From assembly GCF_016433145.1 (NCBI RefSeq), contig NC_058132.1, positions 26,788,072 to 26,847,819 of the forward strand: 59,748 nt of DNA. The letters are read 5' to 3'. The stretch's first letter is position 1; each line of letters opens with the position of its first letter. Shown here piece by piece: positions 28,189 to 30,178 of the stretch. The notes under the pieces were generated by a model that did no database searches, was not told the DNA's origin, and was given only the letters and a program-made list of their open reading frames with translations. This stretch comes from Gracilinanus agilis. Lineage: Eukaryota. The translations under genes and the position numbers were made by a program.

Positions 28189-30178
28189 GTAGGAGCCCGA
28201 GGCCGACAGTTCGCGGACGGGCTGGGCTGTCTTCGGAGTGAGCCGCGTCCCGATCTGTGCTTCCTCCGCAGACCTTTCCGAGAGGCCAGAGCAGCCCTGG
28301 CCGCCCCCGGGGCTGGCCGAGGCACTGGCCGCGTTGGAGCTGGACGGGGAGCGAGAGTACCCGAGAGATCTCTTCCTCAGTGTTATGGTGAGGCGGAGGG
28401 AAGCCGGGCGCCGACTGGGCTAGATGCCTGCCACCTGCTAGAGGGCCTGCCACGATTGGCTACGACGATTCACTTGTCCGAGGGGCTGATTGTGCGGGTG
28501 GGCGCGGGGGACGGGGCGGCACGCCTCTGTAGCTGCGCCGATTGGCCGAGGTTTAGCACCTTCATTGGTGTCGGGTGCAGGTGAAAACAGGTTCCCTTGC
28601 ACTGGTCGGTGGAGTTGGGGTCAGCCGGCTTACTGACGCCTCCCTAAGTTCCTCAGTGTTTGGCCCAAAGCCACCCTGAAACATGTTTAGCCAATTGGCA
28701 TTTATCATGCGCCTACTGTGTTCTAAGCCCTGGCAATAGAAAGAGACGAAAGCCAGGCCCTCTTCCAAGGAACTCAACAGTCAGACGGGGAGACCGCAAG
28801 CAAACCACCTATGGATGGTAAATAAGCATTCTAGCCAGCTCTTCTTAGCCAGAGGCCTGGCCATTAGGAGAAACCGAGCGAGGCTGGCGTCCACTTCGTT
28901 TCTGCCTTTCTGCGGCTGGGTACAGACCCCCGAGGCAAACTCTCCCTACTGCTCCCACCCCAGGCAGGTCTGGCGCTCCCCAAGGTGGATTTGCCTCTAG
29001 GGGTGACGGCGGAGATGCGTGCCCTCGTGGTGGACTGGCTGGTGCAGGTGCACGTAGGTAGCTGGGGGGTGGGGGCGAGGTCTGGGTGGATTCGCCCCAG
29101 CGGCCGGCCTCAAGCCCCGCCCCTTCCTCCCCTCCCCAGGAATACCTGGGCCTGGCTGGGGACAAGCTCTATCAGGCCGTGCACCTGCTGGATTCGTACT
29201 TGCGCGTGGCACCCGTGCGGCTGCGCCGCCTGCAGCTGCTAGGGGTCACCTGCCTCTTCGTGCCGTGCGAGGTGGAGGAGAGTAGCTGCCCAGAGGTAGG
29301 GCCGGGCGGCGGGGAAGGGGAAGGGGGCCGGGCTGGGCGCACACGAAGATGGCTACCACCCTGCCCCGGCCACTCCATCTCTCCAACCCTGGCACAGCCA
29401 GCTCTTCTGTGCCTCCTGGGCGCCGGCTCCTTCTCACCCGCCGAGTTGCTCCGCGCCGAGCGGCGCCTTCTAAGTCGCTTGAACTTCCAGCTCTACTCCC
29501 CAGGTCCCTTGCTCTGCCTGGGCCTGCTGGCCGCCTTGACCCGGAGCCCGCCTAGGGTGAGCAGGGAGCTCCGGGGCGCGGTGGAGCGGGCCCGGGCAGC
29601 TGGACCCTCCCCCTGAGGCCCAGCCCTCTCTCAGGTTGCGCTCTTGGCCACCTATTTCTTGGAGCTCTCTGTCCTGGAGGCTGAGGCTGAGGCTGCGAGC
29701 TGGGAGCCGGGGCATAGGGCTGCCGCAGCCTTAGCCCTGGCCCAGCGCATGCTGCAGCACGAAGTCGGAGAAGTCCCCGCATTGGCCCTTTACAGGTACT
29801 GCTCCTTTGCCCAGCTCCACCAGAATGTTCTTAGAGATCTTTAGAGATATGTCTTGATGGGAGAGCGCTTGGAGATCCTTCCTGGGCAGAAAGGGAAAGG
29901 GCCAGGGCAGGGCGCTAGCGATCTAGGGCCCCAGGGAAGCACTTCCCCCTCCCGGCCCCTCCCAGGTTCACCCACAACTCTCCTTTCCCTAAACCTTGCA
30001 TTCTCCTTGCAGCAAGGCGGAGTTGGGCCCCATCGAACCCTGTACGATTCGTGTGGCTCTGCGGGGTCCTGCCCCGGGCCGGGCTGCAGTCTTTCTCAAG
30101 TACCCCCGTCCCCAGAGGCAGTGTATCAGCCTTACCGCCGCCCGCTTGCTCTCCAGGTCCTGCATCGCGCCTCCCTGA
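28087..30178 (+). CDS. CCNP: cyclin P (CNTD2), 7 identifiable coding exons; 5' start unresolved; possibly decaying
   Basis: [19 protein letters not shown] (MRAIL helix), [41 protein letters not shown]. Lies between AKT2 and TTC9B as in human. Frame open across GT-AG junctions. Confidence 0.9.
28272..28387 (+). CDS. CCNP: CCNP exon ([39 protein letters not shown])
   Basis: ttcctccgcag| and |gtgagg; matches recalled human [28 protein letters not shown]. Confidence 0.88.
28964..29053 (+). CDS. CCNP: CCNP exon ([30 protein letters not shown])
   Basis: 90 nt, phase 0/0, MRAIL helix. Confidence 0.92.
29140..29295 (+). CDS. CCNP: CCNP exon ([21 protein letters not shown]...[14 protein letters not shown])
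   Basis: 156 nt; cyclin box helices 2-3. Confidence 0.92.
29398..29556 (+). CDS. CCNP: CCNP exon ([25 protein letters not shown]...LTRSPPR)
   Basis: 159 nt; cyclin box helices 4-5. Confidence 0.92.
29635..29795 (+). CDS. CCNP: CCNP exon ([15 protein letters not shown]...PALALY)
   Basis: ctctctcag| and TACAG|gtactg; 161 nt, ends in phase 2. Confidence 0.9.
30013..30178 (+). CDS. CCNP: CCNP terminal exon ([55 protein letters not shown])
   Basis: Acceptor ttctccttgcag; phase matches; YS..EL...C and AV..KY....IS resemble the end of A/B-type cyclin C-terminal folds; AATAAA 73 nt after the stop. Confidence 0.8.

Follow-up and report, generated by a model that had tools for sequence, protein, structure and literature searches.

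The question raised by this locus is whether a cyclin whose kinase-contacting lysine has been replaced by glutamate has been put to a new use or is being lost. The gene lies on the + strand of a 59,748-nucleotide (nt) stretch of the Gracilinanus agilis genome (i.e. positions 26,788,072 to 26,847,819 of contig NC_058132.1, assembly GCF_016433145.1; hereafter the window, to which all positions refer), where eight exons at ~27.9-30.3 kb encode cyclin P (CCNP/CNTD2). To our knowledge, neither a partner nor a normal function is known for cyclin P, an orphan cyclin with links to cancers in humans. The balance of the evidence favours a recent relaxation of purifying selection on CCNP in Gracilinanus, which would make the gene an incipient unitary pseudogene or, at best, the source of a crippled cyclin.

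The identity of the gene was examined by protein searches using a natural 184-codon stop-free stretch (29062-29613) and the NCBI cyclin-P of G. agilis (i.e. XP_044524531.1; P0087) as queries. The closest relatives were the cyclin-P (CCNP/CNTD2) proteins of many mammals, with co-linear exons and 80% identity to the Antechinus protein, and an exon-by-exon alignment of the gene extended over six other species. Translation of exons 2-8 was identical to residues 56-359 of XP_044524531.1, which settles both the organism and the gene. A tetratricopeptide-repeat gene (i.e. TTC9B) is found directly downstream, as in the CCNP loci of other mammals (observed for Antechinus, Dromiciops, Petaurus and echidna), indicating that this is the orthologous locus. 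By its exons and its neighbour, the gene is thus the orthologous cyclin P of Gracilinanus agilis and no stray copy.

Radical replacements at conserved positions were concentrated in exon 5, whose frame 1 translation (29140-29295) contains the motif LFVPCEVEE. The replacements in this exon are:

29164-29166, + strand: AAG codon, T155K
29173-29175, + strand: CAG codon, L158Q
29248-29250, + strand: ACC codon, A183T, common to the other didelphid sequence described below
29263-29265, + strand: CCG codon, A188P
29269-29271, + strand: GAG codon, K190E

In an alignment of 154 non-didelphid CCNP sequences, columns 155, 158, 188 and 190 were 100% conserved as T, L, A and K; this set includes isoforms and fragments and spans eutherians, dasyurids, wombat, koala, Dromiciops, Petaurus, echidna and platypus. 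As these columns are invariant, the K, Q, P and E of Gracilinanus lie far beyond chance variation. The ancestral T, L, A and K were also kept by more distant cyclin homologues in a representative search. Over the 66 columns with at least 97% conservation, Gracilinanus deviated at six (i.e. G100E, T155K, L158Q, A183T, A188P and K190E), while cleanly spliced orthologues had a median of 0 deviations and never more than 2.

Exon 5 alone was recognized by the Pfam model Cyclin_N (PF00134) with 37.5 bits (E 2.3e-9, cut-off 23). For the whole protein, the Cyclin_N score was 83.7 bits in Gracilinanus and 99.9-101 bits in Antechinus, Sarcophilus, koala and echidna, while Cyclin_C (PF02984) scored 26.0 bits (cut-off 22) with higher values of 28.6-44.7 bits in relatives. 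The best fold matches in the PDB were cyclins B1, A2 and D1, and the best-aligned solved structure for exon 5 was cyclin D1, with phmmer placing the glutamate on K112 and the proline on A110 (chain numbering 81-116). K112 of cyclin D1 is K266 of cyclin A2, so the Gracilinanus protein has glutamate (29269-29271) in place of the CDK-contact lysine (CDK, cyclin-dependent kinase). In cyclin A2, K266 and E295 form hydrogen bonds with the backbone of the loop ahead of the CDK PSTAIRE helix (PMC3590450), and mutation of the K266-type lysine is the standard means of disabling CDK engagement (PMC12356897). AlphaFold2 models placed K155 and Q158 in helix 2, and P188 and E190 in helix 3, of the first cyclin fold. 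Confidence for this fold (predicted local distance difference test, pLDDT, of 84-95) was the same as for the Antechinus orthologue and did not discriminate between the two; confidence was low for the second cyclin fold in both species. Two further residues, Glu220 and Phe229, which from motif spacing we take to be the equivalents of cyclin A2 E295 and F304, are both retained.

These results agree with the original prediction, made from the DNA sequence alone. Its assignment of the gene to cyclin P was borne out by the match to XP_044524531.1, the co-linear exons and the TTC9B synteny, and the LFVPCEVEE motif with CCG at 29263-29265 and GAG at 29269-29271 was reproduced by the exon 5 translation. 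The other radical changes that it listed (i.e. GDKLYQAV, EYP and KYP) are all present in exons of the window, the human CCNP motif that it quoted (i.e. LFVACKMEE) is correct according to the CCNP alignment, and the role that it gave the lysine in CDK contact is documented (PMC3590450).

The initiation codon was also altered. The marsupial alignment indicated an ancestral ATG that has become AAG at 28009-28011 through a T>A change at 28010: exon 1 ends in ATG TCG followed by GTGAGC in Dromiciops, Antechinus and Petaurus, and in AAG TCG followed by GTGAGC in the window. The proteins of Antechinus, Sarcophilus and the didelphid-like entry UPI0007B405BA (P0160) start with MSSPV. Given the high identity of the flanking sequence, this is a genuine loss of the ancestral initiation codon. 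The + strand contains no ATG from 27877 to 28384, and read-in from upstream is blocked by a TGA in the same frame at 27997-27999. A transcript that starts at the conserved promoter would have Met116 (28385-28387) as its first AUG, which is in frame with G at both -3 and +4; a start at this codon is predicted to give a 244-residue product with the whole cyclin box. The parts of the gene are:

27739-27902, + strand: putative promoter region with five CCAAT boxes (27739, 27767, 27817, 27843 and 27873)
27897-27902, + strand: TTTGAA resembling a cell cycle genes homology region (CHR), by pattern match
28009-28014, + strand: end of ancestral exon 1, AAG TCG, then donor GTGAGC
28122-28188, + strand: exon 2, 22 residues and the first base of a split codon, with an acceptor (TTGCAG) kept in four marsupials
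28272-28387, + strand: exon 3, carrying G100E and EYP and ending in Met116 (ATG 28385-28387)
28964-29053, + strand: exon 4, in which the cyclin box begins
29140-29295, + strand: exon 5, coding for the second and third helices of the first cyclin fold, with LFVPCEVEE, an AG acceptor and a GT donor
29398-29556, + strand: exon 6, retaining Glu220 (LLRAERR) and Phe229 (LNFQL)
29635-29795, + strand: exon 7, in which the second cyclin fold begins, with an in-frame 6-nt gain
30013-30178, + strand: exon 8, carrying KYP (A336P) and the stop codon TGA (30176-30178)
30251-30256, + strand: poly(A) signal AATAAA, by pattern match

The promoter block TTTGAAGGGGGC.AGCTAGA was kept in the alignment with Dromiciops, Antechinus and Petaurus. 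Exons 2-8 were free of frameshifts, premature stops and splice-site losses, the sole indel being the in-frame 6-nt gain, which gives (GAGGCT)x3 at 29677-29694 (i.e. EAEAEA) in Gracilinanus as compared to two units in all other species examined. The original prediction had called the frame and all splice sites intact, together with the poly(A) signal and the promoter. This was right for each of these parts but overlooked the change of the ancestral ATG to AAG, and the gene is hence not wholly intact.

Loss of this ATG would explain why the NCBI model takes its start from two upstream exons:

26083-26187, + strand: upstream exon of the NCBI model, located by tblastn of the N-terminus of XP_044524531.1, apparently repeat-derived
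27292-27354, + strand: MIR-like upstream exon of the NCBI model, located by tblastn and sequence, with its own ATG at 27292 and donor CAA|GTGAGT

For the first of these exons, a peptide match of 55% identity lies at 45502-45567 on the minus strand, and the second is contained within a MIR-like acagatgaagaa.ctgaggctcaaag element. The NCBI model skips the conserved exon 1, such that the CCAAT/CHR promoter falls inside an intron. Caution is advised in using the NCBI cyclin-P model for this species as its N-terminus appears to come from repeat-derived exons.

Read-derived sequences were compared with the window. The stretch 27900-30300 is covered by a 5,063-nt contig of public run X1 (k-mer depth 21.9), in which a single position (i.e. 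29669) departs from the window, with no difference at 28009-28014. Both CCG and GAG stand in this contig, as do all the other changed codons and the AAG, and base error at these sites, which the original prediction had offered as a third option, is very unlikely. At 29669 the contig has A and the window C (TCT>TAT, S263Y, within YFLELS, a conserved motif). This radical nonsynonymous variant is possibly segregating and reflects either heterozygosity or variation between individuals. All of the runs found came from one study, X1 may be the assembly's own source, and contigs cannot reveal a second allele. Three further small runs (X2-X4, with ~90 Mb of contigs each) yielded low-depth pieces on CCNP exons that included intron flanks and contained no splice joints (28934-29086, 29344-29501, 29972-30260, 29996-30193 and 30011-30162; none over 29263-29271). 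These pieces could derive from exon capture, unspliced RNA or DNA carry-over.

Changes in constraint were assessed using our own GY94-type branch model on exon-wise codon columns of the window gene and its counterparts in Antechinus, Dromiciops, Petaurus, echidna, Tamandua and Ceratotherium. In this analysis, a branch-wise dN/dS test of the kind proposed as a check in the original prediction, omega was raised on the Gracilinanus terminal branch and yet remained below 1, with a value of 0.23 as compared to a background of 0.09-0.11 (likelihood-ratio test, p=0.007; p=0.0016 without the error-prone Dromiciops sequence). For exon 5 alone, omega was 0.42 versus 0.083 (p=0.044) and did not differ from 1. 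As the terminal branch comprises the whole didelphid lineage, a recent relaxation would be diluted. The Petaurus branch provided a calibration, with an omega of just 0.18-0.19 although CCNP is an undoubted pseudogene in this species. The neighbouring gene was used to control for effects of lineage and of assembly quality:

30823-31206: exon 1 of TTC9B, intact and near-identical to those of Antechinus, Dromiciops and Petaurus

Only three Gracilinanus-specific changes were present in this exon, all in a low-complexity linker, which rules out a lineage-wide or assembly-wide excess of changes. GC-biased gene conversion was set aside since the five main changes (i.e. C>A, T>A, G>C, A>G and T>A) show no weak-to-strong bias.

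The timing of the changes was examined using UPI0007B405BA, a didelphid-like CCNP model that shares the derived motifs GVTCLF and EESSCP with the window. From these shared residues, the sequence appears to be that of a didelphid, probably Monodelphis. It keeps the initiator Met and the ancestral T, L, A and K, indicating that the Gracilinanus changes are recent and followed the split of these two didelphid lineages. Ten replacements were private to Gracilinanus, five of them on highly conserved columns (24% of the alignment), whereas only one of the 19 changes common to both didelphids was on such a column (Fisher p=0.011 for private versus shared; binomial p=0.064 versus the neutral expectation). 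UPI0007B405BA itself exhibited ~25 private changes in the well-aligned part, six of them on conserved columns, with W>C in MRALVVDW, replacement of a segment by AWTGT, and L>P and P>L at conserved sites; the model also reads through introns. This sequence looks more decayed than that of Gracilinanus and CCNP may be decaying across didelphids. Protein database searches returned no further didelphid CCNP proteins.

Decay of CCNP was also observed outside the didelphids. In Petaurus breviceps papuanus (GCA_028583685.1, L003:1150-3200) the gene is a clear pseudogene with 1-nt and 11-nt deletions in exon 2, loss of the exon-4 donor (CT in place of GT), a deletion of 2 nt in exon 5, a CAG>TAG stop in exon 7 (i.e. 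the next-to-last) and Met>Lys in MRALVVDW. The NCBI entry for this gene is named 'uncharacterized protein' (P0157). The CCNP exons of Dromiciops gliroides (L002:1500-3660) contain several single-base insertions in homopolymer runs, and the NCBI entry is marked 'LOW QUALITY'; these insertions may be assembly errors or real decay. No CCNP of mouse, rat or hamster was present among the matches listed, and a search of the literature on CCNP loss in mouse gave nothing usable. With a gene apparently being lost in Gracilinanus, dead in Petaurus and degraded in the other didelphid, the pattern suggests that CCNP is dispensable in several mammalian lineages. Such dispensability would bear on how the normal role of this orphan cyclin is to be sought.

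A scenario of decay can be proposed from these sequence comparisons. After separation from the other didelphid lineage, the Gracilinanus gene would have gained changes that are elsewhere removed by selection. With AAG in place of ATG, the canonical protein could no longer be made, such that only a product from Met116 or from the repeat-derived exons would be possible. In the first cyclin fold, L158Q introduces a polar residue into helix 2 and A188P a proline into helix 3, while K190E removes the lysine side chain that forms hydrogen bonds with the loop before the PSTAIRE helix of the CDK. Frameshifts and stop codons would not yet have hit the locus. We infer a protein that lacks function or fails to engage a CDK, and a gene that is heading to loss. 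Relaxed constraint is indicated by the combination of a lost start codon, radical changes at invariant sites, raised omega, the 16-bit drop in Cyclin_N score and decay in other marsupials; replacements at least as frequent on conserved as on variable sites and the possible segregation of S263Y point in the same direction. Among the interpretations put forward in the original prediction, relaxed selection is hence the best supported, base error is rejected and repurposing has gained no positive support.

Several observations weigh against decay. All 304 codons of exons 2-8 are open with canonical donors and acceptors throughout, and neither the poly(A) signal nor the CCAAT/CHR promoter has been lost, although by a rough estimate an open frame over 915 nt is unsurprising with ~10 private replacements. 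An omega of 1 was rejected for the whole Gracilinanus terminal branch (p ~1e-5), and the excess of replacements at conserved sites (5/10 versus 24% expected, p=0.064) fits directional selection as well. Met116, with a good Kozak context, or the upstream exons of the NCBI model could still yield a protein with the full cyclin box, and T155K and K190E could form a compensating charge pair at neighbouring helix ends. The timing rests on one didelphid-like protein, UPI0007B405BA, whose model reads into introns. Among the public runs found, none on record as RNA covers the locus.

The intact reading frame, splice sites, poly(A) signal and promoter would also be expected of a repurposed cyclin (i.e. 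an expressed and selected protein, translated from Met116 or from exonised repeats, whose role has no need of the canonical CDK contact or of the ancestral N-terminus). The changes in helices 2 and 3 would then be an adaptive remodelling of the former CDK face, in keeping with an omega of 0.23, below 1, and with conserved-column replacements that are somewhat above neutral (p=0.064) and lie in one exon for four of the five. Precedents exist in CDK-independent cyclins without such residues, such as cyclin F (PMC12356897), and in the K112E form of cyclin D1, which retains kinase-independent functions (PMC4496164). Human CCNP is likewise without a known CDK partner, immunoprecipitation-mass spectrometry (PMC5579190) and yeast two-hybrid (PMC8648692) having both been negative, and for this reason the contrast between CDK-dependent and CDK-independent roles is weak here. 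A helix-internal proline and a core Leu>Gln change are, however, more characteristic of damage than of tuning, loss of a start codon is hard to view as adaptive, and the same gene is plainly dying in Petaurus and the other didelphid. A long early stretch of the branch under constraint accounts for the low omega, and the lack of an RNA run covering the locus among the public runs found counts against an expressed protein. Repurposing is consequently considered unlikely. A particular form of it, a natural 'K112E-type' cyclin in which a selected protein with a remodelled N-terminus has given up the lysine contact or moved it to residue 155, is judged to be quite unlikely. If true, this form would offer a natural experiment in which the roles that an orphan cyclin plays with a CDK could be told apart from those that it plays without one.

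An ordinary CDK-binding cyclin P, in which K190E is tolerated or compensated (e.g. by K155) and the remaining changes are mildly deleterious or neutral, would accord with retention of the Glu295 and Phe304 equivalents of the interface and with pLDDT values of 84-95 for the first fold that equal those of Antechinus. In cells, cyclin D1 K112E still co-precipitates CDK4/6 (PMC4496164). Against this, the lysine is invariant in every CCNP found and kept by the more distant homologues of the representative search, alanine or glutamate at this position is the standard means of disabling CDK activation (PMC12356897, PMC4496164, PMC3590450), AlphaFold2 is insensitive to point changes and the start codon is lost; normal CDK binding thus appears distinctly improbable. 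A last explanation attributes the changes to assembly or sequencing errors, or to a rare decayed haplotype of the sequenced animal. The single study behind all of the runs, the chance that the run that best covers the locus is the assembly's own source, the inability of contigs to show absent alleles and the nonsynonymous C/A difference at 29669, which shows that the gene is variable, are all compatible with such an artefact or private allele. This explanation is nevertheless barely credible, as all of the changed codons and the AAG recur in a contig at k-mer depth 21.9, a long time is needed for a single haplotype to gather five independent base changes, of which four are transversions, and the neighbouring gene is clean. 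Having weighed these alternatives, a dispensable gene that is starting to decay is most likely, rather than a new kind of cyclin.

Four known systems come closest to this gene. Cyclin P (CNTD2) of other mammals is the orthologue, sharing the exon structure, the TTC9B neighbour and above-threshold matches to Cyclin_N and Cyclin_C; the Gracilinanus gene differs by Glu for Lys, Pro for Ala, Lys for Thr and Gln for Leu, by the lost ATG and by a Cyclin_N score that is 16 bits lower. Radical changes at conserved sites are common to the Petaurus pseudogene, which represents the end state, whereas in Gracilinanus only the initiator codon is gone, and frameshifts, stops and splice lesions are as yet absent. 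The engineered K112E ('KE') mutant of cyclin D1 carries the same substitution at the same aligned position, and this mutation strongly lowers CDK4/6-dependent pRb phosphorylation, the mutant being termed 'kinase-dead' (PMC4496164). In that mutant, the change is single and the partners are known; in Gracilinanus, the change is natural, accompanied by other damaging changes and located in a cyclin without a known CDK partner. Were the Gracilinanus protein to have remained in use, it would represent the natural equivalent of this kinase-defective cyclin. Cyclin F is a precedent for a cyclin-box protein that lacks the Lys266-type contact and binds no CDK (PMC12356897), but its family is ancient and conserved, carries an F-box and has an established function, whereas the loss in Gracilinanus is recent, confined to a single lineage and coupled to loss of the start codon. 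Elsewhere in the window, runs of N were present at 38005 and 42273-42356.

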